A stretch of DNA of 64,000 nt from Takakia lepidozioides (GCA_030704615.1 CM060731.1:32054001-32118000); one strand, 5' to 3'; shown: positions 6,469-56,600, counted from the first letter of the stretch. The notes: generated by a model from the letters alone, not told the origin. A program made the numbers and translations.

Positions 6469-9360
6469 TTAACGAATGCGAGTCAAGCAATTGAGAGCAC
6501 TGCCCACCTCCTTGGTCCTAGTTTTGGAAGCCACCTTGGTATCAGGGCTGCCAAAAACTTGCCAGAAGCGCAGTGTCTCATCACCAGCAGCCGATGCCAC
6601 TGTGAACCCATCCGGACTCTACAACACAAGGTGACAAATCAGAGTTTTCATCATTAACATTTTCTGGAGATTGGTACAGATGCACATGAAAGAACACAAT
6701 CATAATCTCAGCAGATAGAATATGATTTGTATTAATTGATGTGAAGTATACACACCTGAGTCAAATGAAGAACCCTTGATGTGTGGCCAGTAAGCTCAGC
6801 CATCTTGACCATGGATGGATATTTCCACAGGCACAGCTGGTTTTGACTGAAACCATGTGAGCTTAAAATTTCTCTTTCATGCTTGCTCCACTGCAAAGCA
6901 CAGACCTGGCAAATGTCCACCTGACTTAGATCGGATATTGGTGCGTTGATAGAATTGCACAAGATACAGGACAAAAAACAAGCGGACAGTGCTGGACAGG
7001 ATAACATGAGACAAAGAGCTAGCATACTTGAGAATTTGTGTCAATACTGTTCAGACATGCCCCGGTGTGTGTGTTCCAGAACTTGATGCACCGATCGGCC
7101 GTGCCACCACCTGATGCCAACAAGTTGCTTTGGAAGGGGCACCATGCCAAGGCTTTCACAGCTGCCTGGTGATCATCTAGGCGGTGAAGATAAGGGCTGG
7201 GTCCACCAGATACTGCTGCAGCTGCATCCCATATGTGTAGCAGGTTGTCATTACCGCCACTTGCCAGTTGCTGCCCTGAGAGCGACCACTTCAGCCCGCA
7301 TACCTCTTGCTCATGGGCAGCCATTGTGCCTACAATATGCTCCCGGATTCTCACTGTTGCATACACCACACAACTTAGAGTGAGCAGTTTGGACTGACAA
7401 GTTTTCTTTCTCATCACACCCACCATTCAGGATAGACTCAAGCTGGTAGCAGTTGATGGAAAATGACGAGATGGAGTGTAACTCACCGTCGTGGTTAAAA
7501 ATCATGCTGTCCCGACCCCCAGTGCTAAGAGTGGGACCGTTCCAGGCAAGACTGCCCACACGTGCAGTGTGACCCTTTAGTGATCTCAACTGCACATGTC
7601 ATCAAGAAGACAGAGTGACTTTTAGCAAAGTGATTCCAGCAACTAGCACAGATAGATGAGTCAAAATTTGTGAGCTCAGTCCGGAAGAGATGTTTACAAA
7701 TGCCATGGATCTACTTGTGCTGTGAATCTCATTGTGAACGAGAGGGCCTGTCTGTCCACTCACCTCGAAAGAAAAATCATGTGAAACCCTTTCTCTCTTG
7801 CATGACCCTATACCACACATCTATTTCAAAGTAACAAGATTTTATACCTGACGCAAGGAGGTGGAGTCCCACAGCTGAACATCAGAGTTGTTCAAACCAG
7901 CAGCAAGGTACTTTCCGTCAGGGATGTTTACAAATGCCATGGATCTACTTGTGCTGTGAATCTCATTGTGAACGAGAGGGCCTGTCTGTCCACTCCCCTC
8001 GAAAGAAAAATCATGTGAAACCCTTTCTCTCTTGCATGACCCTATACCACACATCTATTTCAAAGTAACAAGATTTTATACCTGGCGCAAGGAGGTGGAG
8101 TCCCACAGCTGAACATCAGAGTTGTTCAAACCAACAGCAAGGTACTTTCCGTCAGGGGCCCATGAGACACTGGTCACAGGACCCTCCTCCTCAACTGTGA
8201 GCAACTCCTCTATTGAGCTGGTAGTTGCATCCCACAGGTACACTGTAGAGCCCAGTGCCACTGCCAGGACATTGTTGGCACTCCAATCCAGCAAGTTAAG
8301 GTAGTAGTCATCTAGTAGCTCTGGCGCATCGAGTGTTCTCTCTGCTGCCTGTTTCACACCATTCATGAGTGTGTTACACCACCATCATACAAATAGGAAG
8401 AAAGTAATGGATGACTATGAGACCCTATAGTCCCACTATTTCTGTTCTGCAGCTCATCAGCAGCACAACATTCACAAATAGAGCATACCTGAGGAATGTG
8501 ACGAAACATTTTCCGGGGCTTGGCCTGAGCGGCTGCCACATTTTGAGAGTATAGGAGTTTTCGGTCATTCTCGAATCCTTCTGGTGGGGGAGGTGGCTTG
8601 CTCTTGAAGGCCAGAATGCGACTCTGCTTTTGCCCATCATTGCGCAGCAGGTTTTCAGCCAGCTGCCTCTTGTACTCTTCCTGCCAACAGAAGAGAGGAT
8701 GACTTTTTGCAGATAGGACCCTGTCAATGGCTACAACCAAGAACTTCACAGACATACCAGTAGTATCGGAACTCAAATACGCCTCATAACCATCTACCCT
8801 GAATGGCCAAGCATGTGTAACCATACAAATGAACATACCTTTGAAGGAGAAATAATATTGGAGTTGTTGGAATTCTCCTTGGAAAGCATGTAGTTAGCCA
8901 CTTCAAAATCCATGGCACTGCGATCTGTGATGAAGCGATCACTCTGTACACACAACGGTCACCATGCAGTCAGCCATCATGGGAGTTCAATTGCGACCAC
9001 TGAATTTCTACACTGCATAACCACTCACATTCCGAGTAGTCTCAGCATTCTATGCACGGAAGGTGTACATTACGAGCTGGAACCAACTTTGAACCCAACG
9101 TAGGACTGAGATCCTCAGCAAGTCCCCTACACACTCCCCATATTATGTATGGTTGGACCTGACATAAAAAGCATGTATGATGATGCAAAAATCTATTACA
9201 GAATCCACACGGAAAGAGGACATACCGCTCTGCCAGGAGTCTTGCTCTTTGGAGTCTTTTTTGAGAGAGGCTCGGGGCTGACGTGCTCTCTGAGAGGACA
9301 CCGATCCCATCGACCTCCCTTATTAGAGGACTTGCTTGGCGTCTGGATAACCTTAGCCAT
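6469..9360 (-). CDS. CDC20: APC/C activator CDC20 (Fizzy), 8 coding exons
   Basis: ATG 9360. Exon 8943-8839 has C-box-like DRFITDR and KEN. Also [10 protein letters not shown] (Mad2-interacting-like), [27 protein letters not shown]40 repeats ([43 protein letters not shown]) and a C-terminal IR tail (LTRIR*, TAA 6471-6469). Confidence 0.97.
7690..8157. repeat. 234-bp tandem duplication spanning a CDC20 exon 3' end, donor site and intron
   Basis: 7690-7923 vs 7924-8157, about 3 mismatches by eye. Confidence 0.95.
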
Positions 9361-16598: not shown

Positions 16599-16648
16599 GG
16601 GGAAGGAGGACTAGAAAAGGGGAGCAAGTATGTGTTTCAATTTTGTTT

Positions 16649-17531
16649 CGATGTTAAGAAGTTGTATGGATGTTAGTTTGTTTCAACTGTGATTTGGAGT
16701 TGATTCATTTCTAAATTCTGATATGTGTGATTTAAATCTATTATAATTGAAGACTAAACGTCATAAATGTATCCTAATTGTGATATAGTGGAAGTTTAGG
16801 CCACAATGATTTTGATGTGACCATGACCAAGACTCCAATTGAGGATTACTAAAAAACCAACCCATCCAATAGGAAGGGTGGAGTGATTTGCAATTGGAGT
16901 TTATCTATTTTGTTTTTAATTGAATGTTTGATGTACAATTGAGAATGAAGTCTGAATGTATGTGTGGTCTATTGTGATCAATCAGACGATTGCTCATTGA
17001 TTTGTATGATTCAATCATTTGACAAGTTGAAAACACTCATCCCATAGCACTTTCTTCATAGTTCTCCCCAACAGCGGCGCCAAATGTTGAATAGCTCATC
17101 AATTGATGGATAATTACAAATTGTCGTAGTGGATCAAGATCGAATGTGGGGAGAACAACAAGGAAGAAGGTTGTCGCTAAGATAAGTAAATTCATGACTG
17201 AATCATACAAATCAATGAGCAATCGCATGATTGATCGCAATAGACCACACATACATTTAGACTTCATTCAATTGTAAAGCAAACATGCAATAATTCATCC
17301 TTCCTATTGGATGGATTGGTTTTTTCTTTTCTCCACTCTAACCACCCTCAATTGCAGTATGATCATAATCACATCAAAACCATCATGGCCTAAACTTCCA
17401 CTGCATCACAGTTGGAATACATTTGCGACATTCAGCCTTCAATTGTTATAGGCTTCAATCACACAGATCAGAACTTCAAAATAAATTAACTCCAAATCAC
17501 AAACTAACATCCATACATCTTCTTAACATCG
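16649..17531. repeat. Long diverged inverted repeat (arms ~16649-17018 and ~17194-17531)
   Basis: For example GATGTTAAGAAG.TGTATGGATGTTAGTTTG vs CAAACTAACATCCATACATCTTCTTAACATC, and ATTGCTCATTGATTTGTATGATTCA vs TGAATCATACAAATCAATGAGCAAT. Confidence 0.85.
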
Positions 17532-20500
17532 GCACAGACTTGAGATACAATATATATGCACATTCAACTAAACACAATTGATATGAGTTTTGAATACGCA
17601 CAGGTATGTGCATTGTCTGTCCGTGTTAGCACGCCTCTAGAATATAAACTCTACCAAAAGACACTGCAAAACATTCGTCAATTCCCATAACATCTTTTAA
17701 ATTTGTGTTTCGAACAACATTAAGAAGTACGTCTGAAATGCTACCTCTAATATTATGTGTAATTCTATCTCTAAAATTGTTGTTGGATCTGTACATATGT
17801 ACATGCGCCAGAGTCCCAAACAGCGGCAATGTAATAAAATGTTTTGTTGGACCTATTGCATGGAGCTACTACCAAAGTTCGATCTCTTAAGGTGGGCAAG
17901 GTTTATCCAAACAAATTTGCTGAATAACAATAATGCGATCAAAAGGAGGAAAGCTTGGCTTAGATTGATCAATTTAGCTTTGTTAGGATCTCAGTTTGAA
18001 TATATAGTGAAGAGTATTTCATTTTGGAAAGGGGCAACATTGTCGCTCGAAGGAGATGTCACTTGAATATGTCACCCATTTACATTGACGTCGGCCTTGA
18101 GCAAGTACATGTATGTCTTCCATGGCCCAAACAGGATTGCCAACTGTGGCCTCCATCCTTCCACAAACATTTTCTCATATCAGACCAGCATTGAACCTTA
18201 GACTTAGTCAGCGGCTACATAAGGATCTATGATGATTGTACATCAATGTTGGTTTGCCACAATGATGCAACATGTTTTCCAAAATGCATTGGTTCTAATG
18301 TCGATAGGATTACGTTGAAGAAAAATAGCTGGTTTTTTTAATGTGTTTCGTAATGGGAAATTGTTACTTTAAGGAGATACTACAGCTCTTCCTACTTCTA
18401 CTGTTGTTTCCTAAGATATGAAAGTGAGGACATAATTCAATGGAGCCTTGGTATCGACGTGATGCTGATAGTATGTCCAAAAATATCTAACTGCCCATAT
18501 TCACACTACCCTATATTGTTACTCGATAACATGGAACTTCTTGGTTTCATTTCCTGGAATAGTGTGATGTTTCACCAATTCAGTAAATTCGATAAGAGCA
18601 TCCCATGAGCTCGAATCTTCCTCCCCATCCGTCGCTCGTTTCAGATCCGTTGAAGTAAATAGGTGGGCTGTCGAGTGATAAACAACCACCATCACTATGT
18701 GACATTGACAAGATTTTGAACATCCCATCCGTGAAGGTTCGGCTTTTCGCGCGAGGTTGAAAGCATTCTGACAAGCCGCTGCATGACTTTTAAGGGTAAG
18801 TACGTTGGAGAGGAAATCGAATGCATCATTTTCCACCCGGATGATGAGAACCGCTCGCCACTTTTCCAGATGAACCTTAATTCTGCTAGAGAGGTGAGCT
18901 CATCCCTTGACAGAATGAAGGTATCACATGAGGGTATTGTCACAAAAGATCTACAACGTCAAATCACGGAACTCTATACGATAATCAGGAAACGGGATGC
19001 AGATATGGTTGCAATGAAGCTTATTATGAGACTTTTTCCAAGAGTTTCCTATTTCTTTTCACCGATGGTATTTCAATTTGGGAAATTGAGAATCAAAGAT
19101 TTGCACAATTGGTGAAGCAACCCGATCCATTGATTGGACAATCAAAGAAAGACTTTAGCTAGTTTCATGTATGTGGCACCTTTCAAATTCCAAATAATGA
19201 TGAACAAATTTAGGTTCACATTTTTGGATTAGCTCTGATGATACTCTCAACGAATGGTGACGCGATCTTCTTTTGAAACAATTGGATTCATATCCTACAA
19301 GATCATGAAATTGCCTTGAAGTTCATCTCAATATTTAATATGGAGCTTGATACTAAATATTCACTCGATCATACTGCAACCTAATTTCTTCAGGAGCTAA
19401 TCCGATTAAAAAACTTTCACAATATGTCCATGTAAGGCATTTTATAAATTGACGACGATGGAGCTCAAAAATTTGGGATCCTAGAAGAAGAGTTTTTTGA
19501 GTTTAAGGACTTCAAGTTGTGCTTAATACATAAGCCTAAGACAACATATTATCTCAGAGTGCAAAATTTCAATTATTCAATAGTTTCCTATCAAATGTCA
19601 AAATTTGAGGTGAAGATGGTTCAATAGTACCACGTGATTCCATTGATTACACCTATTATCCGAGGCAGTTTGAGGCACCTTGAAAATGATAGGAATAAGA
19701 GCAGTGGTGAAGGAAAAAGGCGCAGAAGTTGATTTATTTGCAAGGATGCAAACAACTAAGTGTGGGTGTATATAGAACATCCGAAAATCCTGGGGACTTA
19801 AAATTTGACATTGTGACCATTTTTGCAACATTTGGAGTCCAATAGATACCCCATAGACATATGCCAGTGTGTATAGGGCTGTAGAGGTTACAATTTGTTG
19901 GAACCATCAATAGCGGATTCTCTTTTGATCATGATTTTTGGTAGCATTCTCGAGTAGAAGAATGTCTCCAACTCAGCTGTACGTCTGTATGTCTGGTGTT
20001 AGTGTTGGTTAACAATTTAATATTAAAAAAGTACTTTCACAAGCAAATTTTTTTTAAATTTTTTAAAGGAAACCAAGCTGGGAGCGACACTAGCTCATAA
20101 TTCAGGCCCTTGAGGAGGGGAAAAATAACAAGTGTTGAGCGGGTATGTCAATGAGAACATCAATGAGAACCTACGGACCCGGACTTGTCAACATGAAAGC
20201 CCATTAAAAGCCCGCCGGCCCTGGGTGAGGATATTTAGATTTTTGTTGTCCGGCGGATATGCATAATCTATGCTCATTTTATGCATCGTTTTTGCTCACA
20301 TGACTGGCCCAACTTCTACCAACATGCATATCAATAGTTAAAATCGAAATAAAGTGTGAGCCAAAACATTTAGTATGCCTTCAATATACAAACATACCTC
20401 TGGATTTTCCCAAGAAATAGAAATATGTGGCAAAAGCCGCCATGACGTGTATATTTTGGATAGTATATATATAGTATATATAATCAAGAGAAATCGTCTT

Positions 20501-31713: not shown

Positions 31714-34700
31714 CTACAAGTAAAGGGATAGTGATGAAGCTCCAACTGCCACAATGATAAAGAGTAGCACACTTGTCCCCACCCTCAGAGCAGGACTGCT
31801 ATTGGGCAGTGTGGGATAATTCTGAGGATCAGGAAGCACACAATCATCCCCGTTGAAGTAAATACGATGAGGAAAGGCCCACCCATTGCTAAATGTAAAC
31901 GACGGGTCCTTTTTAAATAAAATTTCTGATTGGACATTTCCGTCCCGGCCAGCCTGTATGAGCATGTCATTAAAATACTTGACACCCCAAAAAAGAGCAG
32001 AGTCATCTGCACAACCAAACAGACAACATATGTTAGATGGACTAGGTAATTCACAACTGCGAAAGTTCCGCTCCACCTCACTCTCAAGCTGTCAGTCTCA
32101 GTCTTGCATGGACACTATCAACACACAACAACCACATCAGTAGAAATAGGGCAGTATCAAACCTACGACATGCATTGGGATACCTCACCAATCAAGTTTG
32201 CTATGTTCCATGGCTGTGAATAAAAACACGTAGTAGTCCCCACTTCAGTTGGAGACAGCCTTGCATAGTGAGAACACCCAGACGCCATTTTCCAAACCCC
32301 TACTCTTGAACTAGGTCCAGGATTTTACTATGAAAGGGACCAGTTGTTGACTCCAAATCCGTAAATTGATCATGTCCACCCACATATCTGCAGAGATGAA
32401 ATGAATGAACACTCCTATGATCTGTTTGTAAATGAAATCAGCTTCTGATACTTACTGCTATAAGACCCATAGGGATTTAAAGCCTGGTAGTTGAAGCTGA
32501 AAGCCTCTGTGAAATTACTGAAGTTCGGATGTTGAGCAACCACATTCCATTGTGAGAAATTCCTTGAAAAATCACGATTGGTGATGGTGATCTTCACTCG
32601 CCAGTACTCTTTATAGTTGGTCTTCACATGCCAATGAATTTTTACAGGGCACATATCCTGGGTGCAATAGAGAGTGTCAGGGGTATTTTGAGTGCTATCA
32701 GCTCCAGTGCTTATTGCAGGGATATCAGTATATCGTGTATTCCTGAAAAATCACATATAGCACATTTATAGAGTCAGAAGATTGTACTCATAAGACGTTT
32801 GCCGTAGCCTTTTATAGAGTCAGAAGAGAGAGACAGAGACCTAGAAATTTGGTGAGTGCCCAAGGAAGCCCAAAGCTCACAGGAGTGTTGACCAAAGTGT
32901 GAGTCTCAACAATAGGCCAAGATATTAGTATAAAAAAAGGGTGTCAATTGCTTCCTGATGACAACTGACTCCCAAAGGTGAAATGGCCAAACAATTTTGA
33001 TCTTCAAAACTGATACCTCACACAGAATCACAACCCATTATGCATCATCACTGCGTTGTATGACTAGTACTTCCTGGAGCTCCCATATCCCACAGTGTCC
33101 TAGTGGAATGCTGCTGAAAGTGTTGTTAAGTAGCCCGCGGCATGGACCACATATAAATTCTCAAAGAAGTCTCTTTACAACCTCACACTTCAACCTGACT
33201 ATGAAAAGAAGATGGGCTGACAAATATCACTACCCTAGCATACTACTTGATAACTGATGGGCTTCATCCAACCACATGACATCACTTGTTGTGGCAGACT
33301 CTTGAAGACGGGCCTTTTGATGTTTATCCACAAATCTCCAACAGCAACAGCAGAAGCAGGAAATGTCTATGTTATACAAGAGAAGATCATCGAGGCTGGA
33401 AGTCTTACGGATCCACACAGGTCTGATCGTTGCCATCAGAGGTCGAGAGAACAGTAGAGTTGGATGGACAGGCGCATGCACAATCCGCACAAGGAACAAT
33501 CGTTGAATTGTAGAATGTTGACAAGGATACACAACATGTTGGGGCCTTCTGCGCCAAGTACTGTGAGTAGGTGCACGTTACATTCCATGTCACTGCATGG
33601 ACACAGGCAGAGATGCAAATTTAGATCACCTTTACCAGCCTCCTCTTCTACAATGCAAATTACAGCCATGGTGTGGCAATTGACAACTCTTCATCTCATA
33701 ACATATAAAATAATGTCGCACCCAAACTTTCTATATGCAACAGCAGGTGGCACACAGTATTTGATCTGAGGGCATGGCAAACTGATACCGTTTCCACAAA
33801 CTCATTACAATTGAGCACATAGAAAGCACGATGAATCCAGGCAGAAAACGGATAAGTGGGAACGTCCTTCAGTAAAACTAGACTACGACCCCAAAACCCT
33901 GACTATATTTAGGCGAGGGACAGGAACGCACTTAAGGCTTCAGTGAATCTTCTCTTGTCTGTTGAAGGGAACAAGCTCGATTTCACTTTTGTTGCGGGAC
34001 CGCAGGTGTACCCAGGCCCTGGTGTTTGTAGGGTAAAGTTCTTTGGAAGGACGACGGTGGTATTGGTAGTCCCCGACTGTCCGACCGTTATTTGAAAAGC
34101 AGATAATGCAGTCAATGGATCTTGGGCGTAAGCCGATATCACCCCGCCTCTACAGCAGTTTGCAACTTGTTGATTGTAAGCAACACCTGGTAGCAGGTCA
34201 ATAACGGTAGGCTTAGGAGAACAGCAGTGAGGCAAAGGGCTGGTGTGGAAAGCAGAGCAATCGCCCTGTTGCGTAGTTTGTGCACCAACCATGCTCCAGA
34301 CAATCTCTTTTTTAGCCCAGGTCCAGCCTAACCGCCAGCCAGGAGCTGTGATGTGGCGGTATTGCTGCCAGTTGAACATTGTAACCTGAGCCTGCACAGA
34401 CGATACCAACCATTGCTCGGGATTATGATAGCCGAACTGCCAGGGTGCATCCGCCCCAACCAGCTCACGAGAAGGACACAGAACGACTCCTTGCGGAGCC
34501 AGAGGAGGAAATGTAGATATTCAGCATCTATCGACCTACCTACCGCTGGAAGGTAACACCGTCCAACTGACTAGGTGAACGATCACCAAAAAGCCAAACT
34601 TTGGACCATGAGAATGTTTCCTGCTCGCTCTCACTCAGCAGCCCCAGCAAAAGTGACACTAGAGACTCACCACCTTCAGGTTCGTCACGTCACGCAGTCA

Positions 34701-35202: not shown

Positions 35203-36756
35203 CGCGATGTTTCCACACACCCCTCCCGCCTTGCAAGTTTTTGTCACATTTCAAGGCAAACCAGAACTTTTCTTGAACATGGGGACGTGGCACTCTGCAA
35301 CAGCCTCACTCCTCCTCAGTCCCCAATCGCGCAACAGCCATCACCGCGACCAGCCAACCAAGTGGAGCCAGACTGGGAAAATCAGCGGCTCAGAACTAAG
35401 CATACATGAGATTCTAAGCTTCCTCTAAGCAATGGTAAGCACAATCAACTCTCTCCACAGGATCTACGGAACAATGCCCATCAAAACCACAACAACACAG
35501 GACCACCCCCTTCCAACTTTCCCCTGCAAACCTCGAGTAAACGATGCAAGCAAAACCCACAAGCTTTCCCTCACAACCCTCCTTTTCCTCTCCCCTACGA
35601 GACTAATAAAAGCGGAACACCCACCCCACTCCACTCCACTCCACTCCACCATAGATCTACAAGGCCAGCGACCAACAAGTAGTTGTGGGAGAATCCCTCG
35701 ATGCGAGACCAGACAACAACAGCAGCTAGCTGCTCTTGCGGCTGCCGGTAACTGCTTCAGGTCTCCACGTGTATTCCTCTCATTGACGGATGCCTGAAGG
35801 GATTTAGTAGCTGTCTAAGCAGGCACCAAACACGTCTGGGCGCTGCGGGATTAGCGCCCCTAATCTCCCATCCCCCGCCCACTTTAGCAAAGGGACTAAG
35901 CTACTCAACGTCTGCAGGTGCCCAGTTTGGGTGTCCTGTTCAGTGTGATCAAAGCTGCAGTAATGCTCCCACGTAATGCTGATGATGACGCTTATGATGG
36001 GCTCAGGTTCCCTCCTCTGCCATGTTCTTTTTACTCGGTTATACTAATTATCAATTATTATGTCGTGGGCCCATAGCAATTGGTGCCAAAGATTTCTAGA
36101 GGGGTGAATGGAAAGGTGTTCATGGAACCACCTCCTCTCATTTTGAAGGTGCCATTCCCTCCTGGGGGCGCTTGCTTCGGGGCGTTTGGGAGTGCCCATG
36201 GAACTCTAAGCCTCAACTGCTTTTAACGTACTTGTTTGAGGAATTTAAGATCTTCCTTAATCCACTGAGAGGATTCTCTTTGAAAGGAAACAACATGTAA
36301 CTTAAGATCTTTGAGTACTTCGACTGCCTCATCTCTTGGATGCATTGCTTGGATGCTCTTTTAGCAGGGAGTGTGGGAGGTTGACCTGGAGCGCCTGCAA
36401 GTGAGTGTGGGCCCTTTGGTCATTGACTCCTGAGGCAGGGCACTAATAATGTGAAGTGGGTCCTGCAGCAACTAACTAATTGAGCGCTGCCTAAATGCGC
36501 ACTACAAACACATCACCATCATTGCGCTCTCCTTCCTCGAATCTCTGCCCCAAACGCGCTCATCAGATCACCGTCTTCTTCCTCCCTCCCTCCCTCCATC
36601 CATGCAGCGCACATCAATCCAACAAGATTCCGGTGGAGTTGGGCTGTTTGATTCATCAGTCTTCACAGTTCACTAGTTTGAAGTTTGAACAACATTTTGG
36701 TTTTTCTTCTTTTGTGTCTAGGGATGTCATACACTTGTTGGATGTAATTTTCTCCG

Positions 36757-37212
36757 AACATTTTGTGGGTCGAAGGGGACGGGGAAAACAAGCATCCAAA
36801 TCACAAATGTGATGCGGAATTTGCGACGGGGATGGCATGATGGTAAGTATATATATTCAAATTCTGCAAACATTTTGCAGGTCGAGGGACGGAAAACAAG
36901 CATCCACATCAACGATGCGTGTGGGATTTGCGATGCGGACGATGCCGATGGCATGATGATAAGTATATGTATGCAAATTCTGCAAACATTTTGCGGGTCA
37001 AAGGACGGAAAACAAGCATCCAAATATGGAGGCGGGCGGGATTTGGCCCTTGATGGTTATTTTTTCCATCTTATGTATCTCCTTCCAATGAATAAACTTC
37101 CAGGGCCTCTGTACCCTGTTCTGGTTTTTTTTTTTTAAAATTTAAAAACCGCCAGCAAAACCCTCAAATTAGAAAGGGCCGATGATGCCGATGGCATGAT
37201 GATAAGTATATG
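36757..37212. repeat. Degenerate ~112-116 bp tandem repeat (about 2.4 units plus a partial copy at 37178-37212)
   Basis: AACATTTTG..GGTC..GGACGG..AAACAAGCATCCA at 36757, 36869 and 36985; GATGGCATGATG.TAAGTATAT three times. Confidence 0.8.
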
Positions 37213-40785: not shown

Positions 40786-43063
40786 ATGTCCAACACACAT
40801 CACGGGGGATCAGGGCTGAAGCTAGAAATGGACATACCACAGGCCACGTCAGCTTCCAATGGAAATGCTTGTAACATTCGTGCACCAGCCTATGATGATC
40901 CAGTTGCCTGTGTCAATACTCGAAGTAGTACCTACGACTACGTGCAAGTGAAGGATGAGAAGACTGATTTTTCCCTTTCAAGATATGCCAGTCCGCCTCG
41001 GGTTCAAGGTCGCGAAGTAAAGAAGGCAACTGACTTCAAGGGGGTGTTCAGGTGGTGCACAATATAGTAGCTGCTATGCTACTATTGATTGCAAGTCCTG
41101 TGCAGCACAAGCAAGTTTCAAGATCTCAACAACTTGAATTTGGTAATTCTGCTTAATCAATTAAATGGGATATTTTGTTCTGATCCGTCATCTTTGATGC
41201 AGTCGTTATAATGGAAAGGAAAGACTTTTCGTGGCCTACTATAATCCGTTGGACCGGCCTACTTTCACGGCCTGCTATAATCCGAAAAGGGGAGATATCT
41301 TGCTAGGTAACGTTTCATGACCAACATCTAGCATTGAGGACAGTCCTAATCTAATCTCAATTTAACCAACATGAATTTGAAGTTGAAGTAGTTTCTTCGA
41401 TGCACATTAGAACTCCCACAGAACTTCAATGTACCAGTTGACATAGTCAGAATATCATTTATCTCGTTCATCCTCAGAGCTCTCAATATTTAGATCTACG
41501 AGATATTCAAAGAAACTCATGGATTCAAGTACAATCCATCACAAGTAGAGATATACCCTTTATAGAGCTCTCAAAACTAAAGGAAACAAATCCATAAGTT
41601 GTAAAGATGCACGCTTACTTACATCAGCTGAAGTTGCTTGGATGTTTTTTTGTCTCTGTAGGGGAGTTTGAAACGGAAGAAGAAGCTGCTGATGCCTATA
41701 ATCTCATGACGTTGAGGCATAAGGGAAGGCTGGACAAACAGATTGATACGGAACTCTACCCTGTATGCCCTCTCCAACGCAAACTATAGTTACTGGAGTA
41801 CTGGAGCCCATATAATTTCCATTTACTCGAAACTTGAATGGCATTGAGGTTAAATTTAAGCCTTGCTGTTTCTTGCTAACGGTTACACTTGGTTTCTAAC
41901 TTTCGTAGGTCACAAAGTATGAACAGGACATGGCAAAGTGGAGTGGGCGACACATCATGGACCTCATCTGTCATTTGAGGAACAGGTACAAATTAGCTAT
42001 TATGATTTCAAGTCTTCCTTTCCAAGTAGTGGGTTGCTGAATTATTCATACAAATGAACAAGAACTCACTATTCTTCTGCAAGGTGATGAGACTTAAATG
42101 TCAAACCTTGCATGAGTGAGGCATGAGTAATTGAGTGTCAAGTTCATAGAGTGATACTCAAATGATCCAAACATGCGTTAAACAATTGGTTGAATTTGTT
42201 TTTGCACGATTAACAGGATCAGGTGCTCGCCTGATGGGAAGATGCGGAACTTCTGGCATGTACAAGCGTAAGTCAATATCTGGTGACACATCCCACATTG
42301 GGATTTCTTGTCATGTTAGCAAAACATGCTGCATGTCTTTAAACATGTTTGCTGCAGATCTGCTGTTAAATGTCTAGGAAATTATAATGAATGCACAAAG
42401 ATATGTTATGAAAGTAAAGGTCATTGCAACTATCCTGGATGAAGGCGGACACCAGCCAGAGCTATTCTCAATCTCTGTACCTGCCTCCTGCTGCAAGGTG
42501 GAGTTGGCTGTTCGATTCGAAACAGTGTCTCTAGTTAAATTACAAACAATTACTGATCCGCTGATCTTGAAGTCTATTACAATGCAGGCGTGCCGCGAAG
42601 AAGGGGATAAGATGGGGAACCGAAGTCACTTCCACTGACAAAGATGGAAAAAGGATCAGAGCTGGGAAAAGTGTAACATTCGGTAAGCATTATACGTACA
42701 TGGGTAATGATGGGTTTAAAAAAGTCATGATGTCAAGTCCTCTAATTGATGCTGCCATTAATATGGCTTCTCCAGAAGTAACAGTGAGGATCAGTTAAAG
42801 ACTGATGTGTCTTCCTTGCATGATTCGTGCGAGCATTTGCAGACAGTTTGTAGTACCAACATTGACTCTTTGATCTATGGAATTTCTTGGCAGATAATGC
42901 TGAAGAGGCAGCAAAGTATGCTGACAAAGTAGCATGCGAGGCTGACGGCTTTGATGCTGTGACAAATTTTGCTCCGAGTACGTACTTCCCAAATATGCCA
43001 GCAGACTATTGGCCAGCTCCCTTCAAGAGCCCCAGGACTGGTTTGTCATTCAAGAGGGGGTAA
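40786..43063 (+). CDS. Highly divergent double-AP2 (ANT/WRI-lineage-like) transcription factor, 7 exons, ~287 aa
   Basis: Exons 40786-41051, 41203-41306, 41662-41762, 41909-41985, 42217-42267, 42588-42682 and 42894-43063 splice (all GT-AG) into an open 864-nt frame: ...DFKGVFS|RYNGKERLFVAYY...DILL|GEFETEEEAADAYNLMTLRHKG...LYP|VTKYEQDMAKW...LICHLRNR|IRCSPDGKMRNFWHVQA|RAAKKGIRWG...VTF|DNAEEAAKYADKVACEADGFDAVTNFAPSTY. The 3' end is uncertain (possible donor at 43041). Confidence 0.8.
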
Positions 43064-43190
43064 CAAAACCCCCTTTCTGAGCCATGGAGGCATTACAGGG
43101 GCAGAGCCCCAGCCCCAAGGCAGAGAGACAGATTCCGGGATTTGAACCCCAGACCACATGCCAATACACCTTACCACCGGGCCACAGCCC
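43050..43190 (-). mobile_element. tRNA-derived SINE-like element
   Basis: A-box TGGCCCGGTGG (43184-43174), B-box GGTTCAAATCC (43148-43138), GC hairpins GGGGCAGAGCCCC and AGGGGGT-N6-ACCCCCT. Confidence 0.55.
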
Positions 43191-45251: not shown

Positions 45252-46135
45252 ATGCGGATGATCTGGTGGGATACCTGGAGGGGTCGGAGGGTCTTCCCTG
45301 CAGATGTGGTGTTCGCGGGGCCACCTCTCTCCAAGGGGGTGGAAAGGTAGCTCACCTATTAACCGAGTCATAGTTGGTGATCCAAATAAGATTGACTTTT
45401 GCGATGATGTTTCACAATATGCATTGCAATTTGAGTTTGCTTTCGTCTTTAGAATCTACAATCTTATATTGTTCTACTCTTCTCTATGATCTTTAATGCA
45501 GGCAATTCAACGGAAAGGAAAACGTCTTTGTCGCCAACTATTTCCATCCAGAACGAAAGGGACGAATCTTCCTAGGTAAGATGTGCACTAAGTGACCGGC
45601 ATGAGCATCTTATAGCATTAACGCTCATTATGTAATGAGCTCGAAAGCAACTTTGATGCCCCACTACATGAGTGCCAAGCTGTCCAGAACCTTTTCCTCA
45701 GAAAACTCAGACAAACACAGCATTAAGCTTCCGCTAGCTCCTGTAACTTCTGCTAACTCTACAGGCCAGCTCGCTGACTGATCCCTTTCCTTGTCATTCA
45801 GCTGCTTGTTCACTGCAACCCATCCCACATGTTAGGTACGTGCTCTTACCTGTACATTTATGTTGTACAGGGGAGTTTCCAACGGAAGAAAAAGCAGCTG
45901 ATGCTTACAACCTTATGTCTCTGCTGAATAAGGGGAGGCTGGACTTCGATATTGACACGGGACTCTATCCTGTATGTCCTCTGGATCTCAGTATTTAGCT
46001 ACCGTGTAGCACTATTCCAGTTGCGACTTAAGGCCATATCATTGTTCTGAAAACAAGGAAATGTGCACTACTCATCCGGTGGGAAATGTAAAGCCTTGAT
46101 ACTGGGTATTTCGATTTTGTAGGTCACAACCTACC
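45252..46135 (+). pseudogene. Truncated tandem paralog of the divergent AP2 gene (first AP2 repeat only)
   Basis: Exons ending 45346 (..SKGVER|), 45502-45575 (QFNGKENVFVANYFHPERKGRIFL|), 45871-45971 (GEFPTEEKAADAYNLMSLLNKGRLDFDIDTGLYP|) and from 46123 (VTTY). Same phases as copy 1, then abuts copia sequence. Start codon uncertain. Confidence 0.75.
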
Positions 46136-49100
46136 AAAGTAGAAGCATTTCTTCCTTGTGCAGAATATTGAAGAGCACTTGTCGCTGTACATTTCAGGTA
46201 CTGCTTGCCAATGTACTGGTCCCGGATTTGCGGAATGCTGAGACACTACCCCCACTGCAAACGCTAAATCAGGACGTGGTATAGACCATGGCATAGGTCA
46301 AAGAACCAACAGCTTGTTGATATGGTACATGACGCATGGCTTCCACTTCGTCAGATGTGTGAGGTGCTTGATCTTTGGAAAGTTTCAGATTGACCTCCAA
46401 AGGTGAAGCCACAGGTTTGCAATGAGTCATACCAAAGTGCTCAAGCTTAGCCTTGACATAATGAGCCTGAGTTAGGATCACCGAACCAGCTTGACGATCA
46501 CGAAGAACTTGTATGCCCAACAAGTAATGAACAGCTCCATGATCGGTCATCTCAAAGGCAGTCTGTAATTCACTCTTGGTACGAAGCATAAGTGAGACAT
46601 TGTCGCAAACCAAAATTGCATCATCCACATATAACGCAAGTATTAGAAATGAACCAGAATGTCATTACAATATGCTCCTATGCGATGAAAGCCCACTTGG
46701 AGAAGGTAAGAGTCAATCCTCTCGTACCATGCACGCGGAGCTTGTTTAAGTCCATATAGACTTCGAAGGAGACGACAGACTTGATGTTCATGGCCTGCCT
46801 TGACGAAGCCTTCTGGTTTACACATGTAGATCTCCTCTTTGAGGTGGCCATGTAAGAATGCCGTCTTGACATCTAGTTGGTCAACCTCCCAATTGTGAAT
46901 AGCCGCCAGTGCCAAAAGAACTCGAATGGATGTGATCTTGACCACAGGAGAAAATGTATCTATGTAGTCAAGACCTGCAACTTGAGAGTACCCTTTGGCT
47001 ACAAGTCGAGCTTTATAACACTCTACCGTGCCATCAAGATTCAACTTAAGTTTAAAAACCCACTTGCAGTTCACCGGCTTACGGCCCTCGGGTAGATCAA
47101 CTAACGCCCAAGTATCGTTCTTCATTAAGGACTGAAACTCAGAAGCAATGGCAGCTTGCCAATGTGGAGCATCATGCCTTGTGTGAGCTTCATGATAAGT
47201 CAAGGGTTCAGTCATCATACTAGACTTAGATGGACGCTCGTGAAAATGAAGATATTTGGGATTAGGTTTGAGTCTACGACCAAATCTGGTAACTTGTGGT
47301 TGAGTACCAAATGTAAAACCAAAGAGTGCAGGGAAAGGAGGACCAATGGTAGTTGGAAGTGCATTTGGGACAGAGGGCTGAAGCTCAGCAATAGGTAGTG
47401 TGTCATCAAAGAATAACGGATTATTATATGACATACGACGCTGTAATGGAGGCTCTGTAAGAGAGGAAGATCCAGCAGGATAGGTGGAGGCATTAGTGAG
47501 TGGTGGAGTATGTGGTAAAGCCACAAGCACAATAGGTGTGGCACATGGGGTGGAGGTGGAGGTGGAGGTGGAGGTGGTGCAAGTGGTACAACAGGTACAA
47601 CAGGTGGGAGGGGATGTAACGGTACAGAAATGTTCCCCACTGTTATAGTAGCCTGCTCCGGATCTGGAAGAGAAGAAGCTGACTCCCACTGAAGAGGCCC
47701 ATCGGATGTAAGAGAAGGTAGGTCTTCGTGGAAAACAACATCACGACTGATAACTATCTGTGGAGTTTGAAGATCAAATAGTCTGTATTCCTTAACGTCA
47801 GTGTGATAGCCTACAAATCGACACTTGCCACTTTTTGCATCTAACTTCTTCTTTTTCTCCTTGGGAATATAAGCATAGGCAATGCAACCAAAAATGCGTA
47901 AATGCGTAACATTGGGTTTGCGGCCTGTCCATATCTCTTCAGGAGCCCTATCGGCTACAACCTTGGTAATTAGTCTATTATGCAAATAGTTAGCAGTAGT
48001 AATAGCCTCACCCCAAATATTATTGGGCATACATGCTGCTTTCAACATACTCCTAGCTGACTCCACTAGAGTTCTACTTCTACGCTCAGCTACCCCATTT
48101 TGTTCAGATGTATAAGGAATTGTAAGCTGAAGTTTAATCCCATGTTGAGTTCAGTATAATTGAAAAGCTTTAGAAACAAACTCGGAGCCATTGTCACTCC
48201 GTAGGACTTTAAGTTGATGTTTAGTTTGATTTTTTGACATAACTTTGAAAGACTTAAAGTTGTGTAGGACTTCAGATTTTGCTTTTAGAAGGACAAGAAC
48301 ACAGTATCTTCTGTAATCATCGATGAAAGTAAGAAAGTATCTGGCTCCTCCACGAGATATGGTCTGCATCAGGCCACATACATCCGAATGGACAAGGGCC
48401 AAAAGTTCTGTTGTTCTGCTGCCCTCCTTTGGAAATTTGTGTCGTTGTTGTTTACCAAAGAGGCAGCCTTCACATAATTTTAATGGGTGCAATGGTATGT
48501 TGGTGAGTCCATCAACTACATGAAGCTTCTACATGAGCCGCAATTTCTCTAGGTTGGCATGACCATATCTATGATGCCAAATGGCTGAGTTGTTCAAACT
48601 TCTATTGGACACAGTCAAGGCCGCACATGGAGGTTCAAGTAACTTTTGTATGCTGCTTATAATCTCGGGGCCTGATGTGCCAACTTTATATAGACAATCG
48701 TGGGAAACCTCATTCAAGATGATCATTTGTCCACCAAAGCCCTCCAAGATGACTTGTTCCTTAGTGAAGGTGACTTTGTAACCGGCAACGACTACGCGAC
48801 TCACTGAGATTAAATTCTAACACAACGCTGGGACATGATATACGACTTGTATAAGCTTCACGTCGCCAGTCAAAAGTCTGATGGCAACATCTCCTTTGCC
48901 ATGGATTAAGTGGTGGGAATTGTCACCGAGGTAGACACTATCTTGCGGTGTGATATGTGCATAAGTCAAAAACCAATGTCTATGAGAAGTCATGTGATCA
49001 GTAGCTCCAGAATCCAAGAGCCAGTCAATGGAAATCTCCTTAACGGCAAACCCTCGAGATAACATAAATATCCTATGTTCTCGGGCGGCCTGTCCAGACT

Positions 49101-50090
49101 GAACTTTGGACGCCTTCTCGTCTGCTAGTAGCTTTCGGCACTCTTTTTTAATGTGCCCCCATCTTATGACAATAATGCCAGGTCCTTTCCTCCTCTTTCC
49201 ATATGGTGTATAGATTGAGGGTTGACTGAGAATGGGTGTGTTAATACCACTCCTCTAACCTTGGTTGACAGGATAATTATTTGATCCTCTTGGAGATCCA
49301 GTTATCTGCCTCTTCTGGTTTGGCTTCCTACCAGCCCAGAATGCCGTGACTCCATCTGTTGCAGATAAGTCATCATTCTTCCTTCTACGAATGTCGACAG
49401 TCAATAATGTGGCTGCAACATCTTGAAGGGATAATCCAAGTTGATTACTTAAGGTCATAATTATGGGCTCGTATGATTGAGGAAGACTACTTAAGAGTGT
49501 CTCTACGTTGTCTTCATATGAATATGTGACCCCCACTGACCCTAGTTGTTCTAAGAGGAGAGTAAATTCATGAATATGAATTTTAATGTCACTCCCTTCT
49601 CTCAAACTGTAATTGACATATTGCTTTCTAAGATGACACTTATTTATCATGTCATTTGTGTGATATACTCTTTGTAAAGCTACCCAATTCCCATTTGCTG
49701 TAAGTGAAGAGGTCGCATGACCGAGACAAGTGTTTTTAACACTATCTATGATTATCAATTGGGCTGTCCTATCTCTATCTTCCCAATGGGCGATGGAACC
49801 TACATTCTTTTTTTAAAAGATAGGATAATCTAATCTTCCAGGTTTGATAGTTAGAACCATCTAATTTCTCTACGGTTCTTTGATCAGACGAGGAGGATGC
49901 CATTGTGGCGCTGATTAGGATTTACTCTTCCTATAGAATTTTAGGACCCTATGTTTTTTGAAGACATTATACATTTTCTATGGTTCAAAAAACTCAATAG
50001 AATGTTAAGGTCAATTTGAAACAAGGAGTCCCATCCCATCGGATCGTTCTATATTATCTATAGAGGCCTGATACCATGTTAATATCTACA
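46130..50090 (-). mobile_element. Decayed Ty1/copia LTR retrotransposon, 3'-truncated
   Basis: PBS TGGTATCAGGCC (50076-50065) beside an LTR edge at 50077; gag; protease WLLDSGATDHM; integrase WHHRYGH..CEGC, LRSDNGSEF; RT YKARLVAKGYSQ, LDVKTAFLHG, LYGLKQAPRAW. Stops and frameshifts; RNaseH and 3' LTR missing. 5' LTR extends right of 50077, end not located. Confidence 0.93.
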
Positions 50091-53000
50091 TTCTATATAT
50101 GAGTAAACATACAAGTGAGAGAGAGAGAGTTGAGACAGAATAGAAGCGTTGTATTACAGTCTCTGAACATACCTTTACATCTCTTGAAAAGTGTCTCTAG
50201 TCTACAAGATATGAAAGGTTACTTACTACTTGACTTACTAATCTACAAACCCTTTAACAATTTGCTTCTGCGCGAGTTGGGGCACAGAAGGGAACAGAGA
50301 AGTGGGGAGAGAAACAGAAAGACACATTTAAGGGACCTGAGGAGTACCTTGGACCTGAAGTCCTCTTGAAAATTTGCACGGCTCGGTGAAGCATACACCC
50401 TATTTGTCACCTGCCATCATCCTCCCTCCTGTGTTGCTTAGGGTCTTTTAAATCACAACAATTCAACCTCAGATCCAACCTGGCAGTCCTGTCTCTTTGG
50501 AATCTGGGAGAGATGTAGTCACCTTGTATATGGGAGTCAAGGATGCATTAGAAGCCTTAGGATGGCTTTGCAGGCCTTCCCAACTACAGAACCACAAGAT
50601 GTATATAAGCTGTTCTTGATCCATCTACATAGTCAATTTTACCACACAGAACTATGGCTATCATATTAAAGCTCCCCTACAGGCGCCTAGTGATGTCGGA
50701 GGCATGTCTACTAGTCCTTGAGCTGGCATCTACTTCCAGAAGAAACCTACTGACACAAAAAAGTACCATATTACAGAACATAGGGAACAGGCATACCTAC
50801 AGATGGCCACAGTGAGTGAGAAGGTTGTGTGGCAAATGAGATTAAGGTAGAAGGAGCGCCACCAATCCACTTGCCCTGAACTGTGCCCTATAACCTTGCC
50901 AAGCTGCACCAAAGACACATTTTCATGTCATGCGCGGCTCCATTCTTCGCTCAGAATTGGAAATTCTGAAGTCAGCAACCCATTCCCTCCTTCCTGTCTC
51001 CCCAACATATCCAGAGCATTCTGTATGGGTCCTAAGCAACCTACATGTACAATCTGTTCAGTAGTAAAACCCCTACCGACTTCCTGCGAACAAGACGAGT
51101 GCAGCAACACCACAACAAATGTAGTGAAACCCACCTCCGGCGCCCACCTGCGTACGAAGAAAGGCTGTCCTGTAGGATCCTGTGACTGAGATGACCCTCT
51201 CTCCCCATACTGCTGGTTCTCAACATCCACAAACCCCATTAACCCACAGGTCTATAATTTGTCCTCTTCGAGCAATTTACAAGACCATCTCTTAAGCGTC
51301 ACCACCGGCTTCTTTAAGTGGTGCAACCACGAGTGTAGACTAAATTATGCCACACAGCAGTCGGCTAAGATACTACAAGGATCAGAACTTCAATACTGGT
51401 GATTCCACTTTATTGTGAGATAGAGTCCAAATGGTACCATTGCAATCGTACAGAGCAGTTTATCATGAAGTGCCAATTCAGGGACCTCATCCTGAATTCA
51501 TTTCCTGGGATTGGCACTCAAATCTGGGTTAGTTGATGTACCTTGATCTCAGTTTCACATGTCTCAGAAGTGATTTCGTTATTGGTGAACGGTATTGTCA
51601 AGGGGAGGAATGTGCCCCCGACTTCACAACGATGTTAGTTATAAGGAACCACACACTCCACCATTCCTTTAGAAATGCCTACCATTCTCACACTCCAATA
51701 CAAGTTCATACTACTGCTAAAGCAACAGACTATTGCAGGTCTCTTTCATGTTGCATATTTTGTCAGCACCATGTGAAAAATGGCTTGCTTGGGTAAGATG
51801 TCAGGGGTACATGGCCAAACAGACGGGTCTTTGCCAGTCCTCAGACGAGGAATTTAATAGAACAGCTGTGATAAGGAAGCACCCACCGGGAGGCGCACAA
51901 AGCCTGATCATTCAACACCCCCCCTCAGGCTAAGCTTGCCCACTCTACAGCTCTCTACAGAAAGGGAGAGTGCAATTGCCCATTCTGTGGGCAACCAGAA
52001 GACAATATTCATTTTCTGATTCATTGTCCCGGGTTCTCTCACCACAGAGACGCTCTCCTCAAATCTATCAAGGGAATTGTGCCTGTACCTCTGTTACCAA
52101 CTTTGAAAGTCTCGAGGCTGAGCCAAAAGCCCAGGCCCTTTTGGAGCCTAGTTATTGGGCAAACCACACATAGCAGATCTTGATGCTTGTGTGAAGGGGT
52201 TTCTAGAGGATATCTGGAAAACCCGGGTCAATTGTTTATTCGAAGGTAAGTCTTACTACCGACGTCAGCCCCTGTGTTTGTCCCTTTGTGTTCCGCTCTG
52301 GGCGCGGGGTCAATGGCCACAAGGCTACGGCAAACAACGTCTTATGAGTACATTCTCTTATCTCCTCGCTCTTTTGTAAGCTTTTTCCATTTTCTAACTG
52401 ATATGAGACGAAGTCACTGAGCAACCTGACACATACACATAAATGCTTCCACCTCTTTTCAGGTTACCCCTAGAAATGTCCTGTACAATTCGTTAGGATC
52501 CAGGAGTGAAGAAAACGGACTTAACCAAGGATTCTTTCCCTTCCCTAACATCTCACAGGAACTTACAGACTATTCCTCCCCCTCCTCACTGTCCTGTTTT
52601 CTGTTTCTTTGTAAGTGCCCTACGGCCACTTTGGCTGAGTTTTCACACTCTGGGGGGTAAAACACACCGAACTGGGCAGATACCCCATGGAGCCTATGCC
52701 CAAGTGTTCACAGAAAATGGTCAATTGAAAGATCTCTTTATTCACCCTTCTTGCACAACAGTGTGATTGACACAGCAACCACAGCCAAATGTGCATGTAG
52801 AGGGCTACAGGCACAATATCACTGTCAACTTTTATGATTGTGTCAAATGAAAGATCATTGGGCATGGGTCATCCAAAACTTCTATATCCTGGTGCTGTAA
52901 AATCCTACCATTTGCTCCTGGAGGATAAAGAGACTACGCATTTGGAATGTATCACAACCTGAATTGACAGGAAAAGGTCTATTTTCTGTCTCATCTCCAC

Positions 53001-53648: not shown

Positions 53649-56600
53649 TGTGAGCTGACCAACCAAGAAAACCAATGTAAAGTGGACAAGTTCCTCAAGC
53701 TAGTGACATTCACATTTGTGCTGGGCAAGAGCCATGGGAAACTTAGAAGAAGACTGCCAGGGATTTCGTTGTCTATAAGTGGAGTGTGAACGTGTGAACT
53801 CAAGATGGCCTCCGTGAAGAATTTCGCAGACAGTATATTGATGATCAATGAGACTGGAATACAAGGCCTCTGGAGAGCAAGCCATATATACAGAGGTGGC
53901 ACGGCCTCGGGCACCGCCGAGTCTAATAAATGTAACATGGCTCATTAGCTAGAAGATAACTGCCAACTACCCCTAAGTAATTACTACAGCCTGCAGCTAC
54001 ATCGATGCAATCGGTGATCCATGTGAAATGTCTTTAAAGATAGCCTGATCATTCAACACCCCCCCTCAGGCTAAGCTTGCCCACTCTACAGCTCTCTACA
54101 GATGATTAACTACAAACTGTTCAGATTCAAAGCACTGAGAGCTTCAGCAGTAGTAAGTCTTCTCTTATGTGCTGGCCACTCCACGAAATAACTGCGATTT
54201 GGGCCGAATGTCAAGCAGAAATGTACAGCCCGACAAAAATTTCCAAGAGCTCTTGGGTTAGTCGACTTCATCCTTTTCAAGAATTTTGGTCAGACTGCAA
54301 ACTTCGAGATCATTCCTGAATTTAGAATGCTTGATTTTTCCAAGAGGCTTGGTGAATATGTCAGCTAATTGTTCCTCGGTTGGTATATGTACAAGGCCAA
54401 TCTCTTTGCTCTCAACTTTTTCACGTATATATAGTGGTAATGCACCTCTATATGTTTAGTGCGCGCATGAAAAACAGGGTTTTGAGCAATCTTCATACTA
54501 CTCTGGTTATCACAGAAAAGAGTAGTAGCTTCATGACTTACAATTCCAAGCTCTCCTGTAAGAAATCTCAACCACGCAGTTTCTTTCACCCCTTCTGTTA
54601 AAGCTCGATACTCACCCTCCGTGCTTGATGGGTTGTTTCTTCGAGCACCAAGTCACTGCCGACTCTCCCAGGCGAAAGACATATCCAGTAGTTGAATGTC
54701 TTCTATCGTGATCTCCTGCCCAATCTGCATCAGTGTAACCGTGAAGAGTGATACCGGTGCCTTGACGAAAACATAGACCATAATCTGCAGTACCCTTAAT
54801 GTACCTGAAAATTTTCTTCACTGCATCAAGATGAGCTTGTTGCGGGTTGGACATGAAGCGGCTAACCACACCTTTGACTCGTTCCCTTTCTCGATAAAGC
54901 CTTCAGGATGAGACATGTACACTTCTTCAGTTAGATCTCCACTCAAGAATGCCGTTTTCACATCCATGTGAAAAATAGACCACCCATTTTGGGCAGCGAT
55001 TGCAATTACTGTGCGGATTGTTGACCACTTCACCACTGGAGCAAAATTATCTTCAAAGTCAATGCCAGCTCTTTGTTCATAACCTCGAGCAACCAGTCGG
55101 GCTTTCAGTTTTTCTGGGGTCAACGTTGAACACCCATTTTGGTGAAATTGGTCTCCGTCATTTTGGAAGATCCACGAGTTCCCATGTTTTGTTGCGAGTT
55201 ATCGATTCCAACTCCTGTTGCATTGCCATTTGCCATCCAGGAATATTGGAAGCCTCTTCAAAAGATGTTGGTTCGAAGGGTACCTCCATAATGTTAACGT
55301 AGTCGCGAAACCAAGCAGGTATCTTTTCGATCCGCTCAGACTTTCTTGGTTCTTGGCCAGCAACCAGTGTAGGAGGATCTTCTAATTGAACAGACATGTC
55401 CTGCGAAGCTGTCTGTGAAGACTCTTCACTTTCAGTCATTGAGGGACCCATGGGCACGTCGTTATTGCATGGAGGAGTCTCAGGTGATACTGGTAGTAAG
55501 TCATCGGTAGGAGAAAAAATGGATTCCTCAGGTTCAATGAACTCCCTTTTAATCACTGGGTCAGTTGGTGACTCTTCAAAATGCACATCTCTGCTTATCA
55601 CAATGCGACGAGAAGAAGGATTATAGAGCCGATAGTCTTTGGTTGAGGAATCATATCCAACCATAACGCATTCAATTGATTTAGAATCAAGCTTTCCTCT
55701 TTCCTCAAGTGCCACATGAACATGAGCACTGCAGCCAAATATGCGTATGTTGCTTAAATCAGGTTTGATATTTGAGAATTTCTCATAAGGTGTCATACCT
55801 GAATTAGCTCTCGTTGGGCAACGGTTGAGAAGATAAGCCGCAGTTTTGACTGCTTCAGACCACAAGAACTTTGGTACCTCTCTTTCAAGTACCAAACTGC
55901 GAGCACACTCGAGCAAAGTGCGATTTTTCCTCTCTGCCACGCCGTTCTGTTGTGGCGTTCGTGGTTGTGTAAGTTGGCGTTGAATTCCATGTTTGTGGCA
56001 GTATTCAATGAATGCTTGAGAGAGGAACTCTCCACCTCGATCTGTTCGAAGACATTTAATACGTTCCCAGTAGCATTCTCAATCATCTCCTTAAAGATTT
56101 GGAATTTCTTTAACGCCTCACTTTTCTATTTGAGGAAGTACACCCACGTCATTCGGCTGTAGTCATCAGTCACGGCCATGAAATACTTAGATCCAGAAAG
56201 AGAAGGAGTAGAAATGGGTCCCCATTGATCAATGTTGAGACTGGCGTGGAAATCTTTCCCGATGTTGTTTGCCTTTCAGACATCCGATGCAGGTTTCAGA
56301 CAAGAGAGGCAATCTTGGCATTCCAACTACCTTATCTTTGTTTGACAGAAAATGAAGACTCTGATAATTCAAGTGACCAAGTCGATTATGCCATAACCTA
56401 GCCCCACTAATGTCTTCTACAGGATTAGCTTCCATGATAGGGACGGCTTTGGACTCAACACATTTAGTAACGAGCCTGTATAAACTATTGGATCGGTCTC
56501 GTACACCGGGTGCAACAATCGCATGAGGTCTATGTCTGTCTACGATCAAACATTTTCTAGCCCCGAATGAAGCTAAGTGACCTTTGTCTGCCAAAGCACC

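Follow-up and report, generated by a model that had tools for sequence, protein, structure and literature searches.

A diverged double-AP2-like gene in Takakia lepidozioides with an ANT/WRI-type exon layout and a predicted rewritten DNA-reading surface

Gene model and immediate surroundings

The window analyzed here is a stretch of 64,000 nucleotides from Takakia lepidozioides (GCA_030704615.1 CM060731.1:32054001-32118000), in which a sequence-only reading, made without database searches, had singled out an intact but cryptic gene with two AP2-like repeats. A script verified the proposed model, which comprises seven exons on the plus strand between positions 40786 and 43063 (Table 1). All six introns carry GT-AG borders (6/6), their phases are 2, 1, 0, 2, 2 and 1, and the codons split by introns read S, G, R, A and D. 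The coding sequence sums to 864 nt, that is 287 codons followed by TAA, with no in-frame stop in any exon, which bears out the uninterrupted seven-exon frame of about 287 aa that had been claimed. The motifs named in the same reading (FKG/FWH, DAYN/KYAD, IRCSPDG and AVTNF..Y) could all be read directly from the translation, as FKGV, FWHV and AVTNF...Y where the flanking residues are included.

Base composition differs between the coding and intervening parts of the gene, with a GC content of 48.5% in exons and 37.8% in introns and a T content of 22% and 32%, respectively. This is the usual contrast in plants between GC-richer exons and T-rich introns. In addition, every intron contains between 1 and 11 stops per frame in all three frames. 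Because of the GC contrast, the T-rich introns and the stops in all intron frames, the intact frame is not a lucky thread through noncoding DNA.

Outside the repeats the protein offers little. The N-terminal region of about 80 aa encoded by exon 1 holds no known domain (Pfam), the protein as a whole amounts to little beyond the domain pair, without long flanking regions, and neither an activation domain nor a nuclear localisation signal is recognisable in its 287 aa. Within exon 2, a 15-nt sequence occurs twice at a distance of 36 nt, with 14/15 positions identical, as located by direct reading and by alignment with a partial copy of the gene further downstream. In that alignment, exon 2 carries about 11 extra residues and, since the 15-nt repeats border this extra stretch, the expansion looks like an internal duplication.

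Table 1. Features at the locus, with positions counted from the first letter of the window; canonical lengths are those of ANT/WRI genes, with the difference shown by the AP2-like gene in brackets
Feature	Position	Strand	Length (nt)	Canonical length (nt)	Content
COBRA-family gene, large exon	33909-34409	-			PF04833, E 1.9e-60; upstream neighbour of the AP2-like gene
Exon 1	40786-41051	+	266		ATG, N-terminal region of ~80 aa, start of repeat 1 (FKGVF); GT donor, phase 2
Exon 2	41203-41306	+	104	83 + 9 = 92 (+12)	beta-strand part of repeat 1; ILL at the end, then one base of a split Gly codon (phase 1)
Expansion inside exon 2	41234-41284	+			15-nt repeats
Exon 3	41662-41762	+	101	89 (+12)	repeat 1 helix (EEEAADAYNL...), closing with ...LYP in phase 0
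Exon 4	41909-41985	+	77	74 (+3)	linker helices (..KYE.., ..LICHLRN(R)); phase 2
Exon 5	42217-42267	+	51	51 (0)	loop of the linker, then the opening strand of repeat 2 (IRCSPDG...FWHVQ); flanked by phase 2 introns
Exon 6	42588-42682	+	95	77 (+18)	beta-strand part of repeat 2; G.RW and ..TF retained; ends in phase 1
Exon 7	42894-43063	+	170		helix of repeat 2 (EEAAKYAD...DAVTNF..STY), then a 25-aa tail and TAA
Exon 2'	45502-45575	+	74		acceptor and donor phases as in exon 2; ..RKGRIFL(G) retained
Exon 3'	45871-45971	+	101		25/33 aa identical to exon 3 (76%); first intron bases conserved too
Exon 4' start	46123-46140	+			first six codons (VT.Y.Q); likeness ends there
Copia-type retrotransposon	46269-49800	-			gag, SH3-like, RVT_2; just beyond exon 4'

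For the Copia-type retrotransposon downstream, self-comparison revealed no LTR pair; no Rfam family was detected between 38 and 47 kb. Capture of the gene by a transposon was considered and rejected, as the flanking inverted repeat consists only of a 22-nt, 77% AT-rich pair, which we take as chance. Directly behind the stop codon lies an element of about 70 nt (43065-43133). It reaches contig depths of up to 130 and occurs at the ends of unrelated contigs, which identifies it as a dispersed repeat; its minus strand holds a tRNA T-arm-like GGTTCAAATCC, with no call from either ARAGORN or Rfam.

Exon layout and AP2 ancestry

In canonical ANT/WRI genes, introns lie at GVT(R) in phase 2, at NFP in phase 0 and at LR(R) in phase 2, followed by a 51-nt exon and by an intron at GT[FY](x) in phase 1, and the exons of the domain pair measure 83, 9, 89, 74, 51 and 77 nt. 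These sizes match the residue numbering of WRI1 codon for codon and reproduce the six positions and phases noted in the sequence-only reading; we found no paper that gives all sizes of the series. The exons of the Takakia gene differ from the series by multiples of three in every case (Table 1). Complementarily, HMMER alignments, which are blind to introns, placed the Gly codon split by intron 2 opposite WRI1 G102 and the codon split by intron 6 opposite WRI1 N199 (residue numbers from PMC9401623, with the PDB chain offset fixed at 55).

Published gene structures allow the junction next to the VYL motif to be compared more closely. A rice trace of the 9-nt VYL micro-exon, AG/TCTATTTGG/GT, corresponds to phase 1 on both sides (PMC6681275), and 'VYLG (phase 1)' is stated in PMC8831610. 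In AtWRI4, VYL is reported to form the 3' end of exon 2 (PMC6681275), and the Takakia gene likewise carries its VYL-equivalent, ILL, fused within exon 2 at the 3' end, in agreement with the claim that the VYL micro-exon is not separate here. Repeat 2 is reported to have a widespread micro-exon at its upstream border, in a moss as well (PMC7714060), which fits the 51-nt exon 5. Overall, the layout is that of the ANT lineage, judged by the papers for the VYL/G junction and by the canonical sizes given above for the other positions. The six ANT/WRI-type intron phases and the 51-nt exon that had been claimed were thus confirmed as 2, 1, 0, 2, 2 and 1, with phase 1 of the VYL/G junction taken from the papers.

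Similarity searches were run with single exons as queries, using HMMER and, for solved structures, a PDB set of 177,635 distinct sequences. Exon 7 matched one structure only, Arabidopsis WRI1 (7WQ5; E 0.022, per-sequence p ~1e-7), and aligned with residues 202-234 (chain 147-179), which cover the helix of repeat 2 and the AVTNF..Y tail. Exon 3 also returned a single match, again WRI1 (E 9, per-sequence p ~5e-5), in an alignment that fits the helix of either WRI1 repeat, and WRI1 was listed once more for a profile built from exon 3 and exon 3'. Because the hypothesis of an AP2/WRI-like protein had been fixed beforehand, the per-sequence probabilities are meaningful, while the database-wide E-value of exon 3 is not. 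In the same line, the ten best language-model neighbours of exon 7 (Atlas) were all AP2 (PF00847) clusters with a score of 0.84, which we treat as a lead only.

The other searches were silent. Scanned singly against Pfam, none of the exons matched AP2 (PF00847). Exons 2, 4 and 6 and a profile of exon 2 matched no AP2 structure in the PDB set, and the Atlas search with exon 6 gave no usable match. Matches of the sheet and linker-exon queries to p97/Cdc48 N-domains (E ~0.1) were set aside as chance. By these comparisons, two AP2 repeats can be recognised, in the right order, by their helix halves, whereas neither the sheet halves nor the linker loop can. The claim of two AP2-like repeats therefore held for the helix halves, where exons 3 and 7 match WRI1, but found no detectable match for the beta-sheet halves, and AP2 ancestry appears supported but faint.

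Purifying selection on repeat 1 and the search for relatives

A translated self-search uncovered a diverged partial copy of the gene on the same strand, some 4.5 kb further downstream, which comprises exons 2' and 3' plus the beginning of exon 4' (Table 1). Gene and copy share, in both place and phase, the donor of exon 2, both boundaries of exon 3 and the acceptor of exon 4, while their introns align no better than shuffled sequence. As the boundaries are shared although the introns are saturated, the copy provides independent support for the exon boundaries of the gene. Exon 4' shows no similarity to exon 4 beyond its first six codons, and a search of the window recovered no exon 1', 5', 6' or 7' downstream and no other AP2-like pieces.

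Comparison of gene and copy over the 56 aligned codons of exons 2 and 3 gave a dN of 0.22 and a dS of 1.11 (omega ~0.2), a measure that covers repeat 1 codons only and is taken against a copy that is itself truncated. Changes were found at 21/36 synonymous and 25/132 nonsynonymous sites (Fisher p 1e-5). Exon 2 alone, which encodes the sheet of repeat 1, yielded a dN of 0.29 and a dS of 1.7 (dN/dS ~0.17). Repeat 1 is under purifying selection, and the family has been selected. A copy that had been a pseudogene since the duplication would by itself exceed the total nonsynonymous change observed, so both copies were constrained for most of their history.

A second estimate came from the intactness of the gene itself. 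In its exons, 112 single changes would create a stop. With these stops, the 24 bases at splice sites and a modest rate of indels taken together, a neutrally evolving gene would have a 5% probability of staying intact at no more than 0.02-0.03 substitutions per site. A pseudogene that died long ago is excluded, whereas a very recent silencing is only improbable. The view that the gene is not a drifting pseudogene was thereby upheld on two counts, the dN/dS of about 0.2 against the copy and the limit of 0.02-0.03 substitutions per site for neutral survival.

We also looked for relatives in public collections. A HMMER scan of 1.84 billion protein representatives with exon 7 returned no relative, nor the AP2-like gene itself; its five matches were bacterial surface proteins whose repeats add up weak matches, and were rejected as spurious. 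A word-based search with exon 1 found no words shared with any protein of comparable length, and two metagenome scans, one using the exon 3 profile and the other exon 7, yielded pattern matches, of which 0 were confirmed. To judge from these searches, no annotated plant protein closely resembles exon 7, and the version belonging to this genome is missing from the collections searched; the protein and metagenome blanks are silent on paralogues within the Takakia genome itself. Similarly, none of the public runs is listed as containing the locus, and the contigs of two small runs from the same species touch only the ~70-nt repeat behind the stop codon, not the gene.

Predicted recognition surface, placement and competing readings

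To compare residues, we read the gene manually against the WRI1 contacts listed in PMC9401623, using the exon borders as anchors. Helix 1 keeps the equivalents of E107 and Y114, with D115 changed to Asn. The linker keeps the equivalent of Y135, which kinks the first linker helix of WRI1, as well as L151 (as Ile), L154, R155 and R156, with L151-R156 located in the second linker helix (PMC9401623); in exon 4 these correspond to the Y of ..KYE.. and to ..LICHLRN(R), respectively. In repeat 2, D209, G217, AVTNF, Y229 and the Trp of G.RW are kept. Since the kept residues E107, Y114, Y135, L151, L154, R155, R156, D209 and Y229 pack the helices and the linker in WRI1, the product would be expected to form two AP2 domains, each a sheet of three strands packed against a single helix, connected by a two-helix linker.

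The residues that read DNA show a different pattern. Replaced in repeat 1 are the base readers H72, E79, W83 and Q98 and also Y100 of VYL, and in repeat 2 the base readers H175, E181 and R183 and also Y208 and Y215. The SSGFSRG loop is replaced as well, including R163, which bridges to D105 in WRI1, and R169, which contacts the minor groove, has become Trp (PMC9401623). Of the conserved Arg/Trp/Glu contacts that the AP2/ERF superfamily carries on its sheet, nothing is left but the repeat 2 Trp, within G.RW, and one basic residue at R67/R73. Loops are 4-6 residues longer than in WRI1, and identity over the domain pair is roughly a quarter by residue-by-residue reading. The sheet exons carry net charges of +3, +2 and +6, with exon 2 at +3 and the strongly basic exon 6 at +6, and the helix exon is acidic (-5). 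In the AP2 subfamily, a conserved linker of ~25 aa separates the two tandem repeats, and its SSGFSRG loop has been called deeply conserved (PMC6361745). Of this linker, the earlier reading had proposed a rewriting; this proved right for the loop, which is gone, but not for the positions of Y135, L151, L154, R155 and R156, which are retained.

Taken at face value, the altered equivalents of H72, E79, W83, Q98, R169, H175, E181 and R183, together with the longer loops, suggest that the DNA-reading surface has been replaced. Because the sheet exons are net basic and the sheet of repeat 1 is constrained (~0.17), nucleic-acid binding seems likeliest to persist, and the protein may act as a small (287 aa) nuclear regulator. 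Its target and half-site geometry would then be predicted to be unlike AW-box or ANT sites.

Placing the gene among known AP2 groups gave a mixed picture. With WRI1 (7WQ5, basalANT/WRI), the sole solved structure matched by exons 7 and 3, it has in common a short pre-domain region, introns at the G102 and N199 codons (both phase 1) and, as predicted from the kept residues, two AP2 repeats with a two-helix linker. It differs from WRI1 in carrying ILL for VYL (IFL in the downstream copy), in all 7/7 base-reading positions (H72, E79, W83, Q98, H175, E181 and R183) as well as at R169 and R163, and in lacking the SSGFSRG loop and the long C-terminal region; the residues that mark the WRI clade are thus not present. 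With euANT genes (ANT/PLT/BBM and the moss APB genes), it seems to share the exon layout including the 51-nt exon, the double AP2 arrangement and the AVTNF motif of repeat 2, yet it lacks their long pre-domain region (~80 aa here), and exons 1-2 contain 0/4 of the euANT1-4 motifs NSC[KR][KR]EGQ[TS]R, WLGFSLS, PKLEDFLG and TFGQR (PMC6361745), so that the euANT signature is absent. With euAP2 genes (APETALA2/TOE), it seems to share a double AP2 and a linker, and the loop of repeat 1 in the downstream copy, at 24 codons, falls between euAP2 (20) and ANT (30), whereas the 26-, 31- and 45-nt micro-exons of that type (PMC7714060) are absent here.

Relative to euAP2, the ANT lineage has 10 aa inserted in repeat 1 and 1 aa in repeat 2. 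By our own count, the repeat 1 strand exon holds 34 full codons in the gene and 24 in the copy, against 30 in ANT and 20 in euAP2, a comparison of the ANT-type insertion that is blurred by indels, as the extra length of repeat 1 stems from the internal duplication and repeat 2 contains further indels. Because the residue-level tests for WRI and euANT failed and the length of the ANT insertion is muddied in this way, we would class the gene as a strongly divergent AP2-subfamily variant without assigning it to a named clade. Membership of an already described clade, which would have spoken against the sequence-only reading, was accordingly not observed for either WRI or euANT. Its suggestion of a fast-evolving, lineage-specific offshoot survived in part, in line with ANT/WRI-type descent, replaced base readers and no close relative among 1.84 billion representatives, while the idea of a candidate undescribed system did not: the gene is no new kind of system but a fast-evolved variant of the known AP2 family.

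Considering the sequence evidence as a whole, we think it reasonably probable that the locus holds a very diverged double-AP2 gene of ANT/WRI-layout descent that is maintained by selection and encodes a predicted regulator with a rewritten DNA-reading surface. Such a regulator probably has a new target. The most likely mechanism would be that of a small predicted DNA-binding regulator with altered geometry between its repeats, and a non-binding decoy is the main rival to it. According to this rival, which we regard as unlikely, the AP2 scaffold remains functional but has lost DNA binding, and the protein acts as a decoy or dominant-negative partner of ANT/WRI-type factors or as an RNA binder. 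The replacement of all WRI1 base readers along with the R169 equivalent and the salt-bridge partner R163 would suit such a protein, as would the fact that its best-kept parts, the helices and linker helices, face away from DNA and that it is barely more than the domain pair. However, a net basic charge persists in the beta-sheet exons, the repeat 1 sheet is constrained as expected for a working binding surface (dN 0.29, dS 1.7), and no partner is known.

Less likely again is a very recently silenced or never-transcribed relic, that is an intact-looking copy sitting in transposon-bordered DNA. Here, the intact frame, start, stop and 12/12 splice dinucleotides weigh against the points in its favour, namely the repeat element adjoining the stop codon, the truncation of the tandem copy beside the Copia element and the contigs of two small same-species runs that touch only the post-stop repeat. 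Neutral survival would extend to at most 0.02-0.03 substitutions per site, compared to a dS of ~1.1 to the nearest copy. Absence of the annotated protein from the public collections searched also fits a relic, but may merely reflect that the genome is missing there. Finally, a gene unrelated to AP2, with a chance likeness of an Ala/Glu-rich helix to WRI1 and an unrelated or wrong gene model, would agree with the blank Pfam scan for each exon, the weak PDB E-values (0.022 and 9) and the unmatched beta-sheet exons, but is very improbable given that two separate exons select the same single protein among 177,635 in the correct order, that the alignments set two introns at canonical codons and phases, that the 51-nt exon is located where the AP2 family has one, that wherever exon sizes depart from the canonical layout they do so by a multiple of three and that the ten best Atlas neighbours of exon 7 are all AP2.

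Returning to the reading of a selected, diverged double-AP2 regulator, a broader version of it is conceivable, although we advance it only tentatively: the gene and its tandem copy may belong to a hidden, lineage-specific radiation of the AP2 family, in which skeleton and scaffold are selected and the DNA-reading residues and the loop have been re-invented. If true, the double-AP2 fold would have been naturally re-engineered for new DNA (or RNA) targets, unseen by standard HMM censuses. Pfam-based surveys of plant transcription factors would probably miss such a gene or dismiss it as decaying. Should the gene be expressed and its product bind DNA, it would show how far a recognition surface can change while scaffold and gene structure persist, and an early-diverging land plant would gain a regulator specific to its lineage. 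The gene would also offer a defined test case of the way in which the linker loop and the residues of the sheet determine which half-sites ANT/WRI-type factors choose and at what spacing.

Several repeats elsewhere in the window were recorded along the way. A large imperfect palindrome of about 0.9 kb occupies 16631-17549, where the sequence aligns with its own reverse complement at 68% across 1010 columns. A tandem duplication at 7680-8157 has a unit of 234 nt (244-nt copies with a 10-nt overlap) and is 97.5% identical, and a tandem array at 36750-37045 has a period of 116 nt, 2.4 copies and 79% matches. Finally, two identical 61-nt direct repeats (51901-51961 and 54042-54102), 2.1 kb apart, sit in a second region with a Copia-type SH3-like ORF (55158-55940, minus strand).
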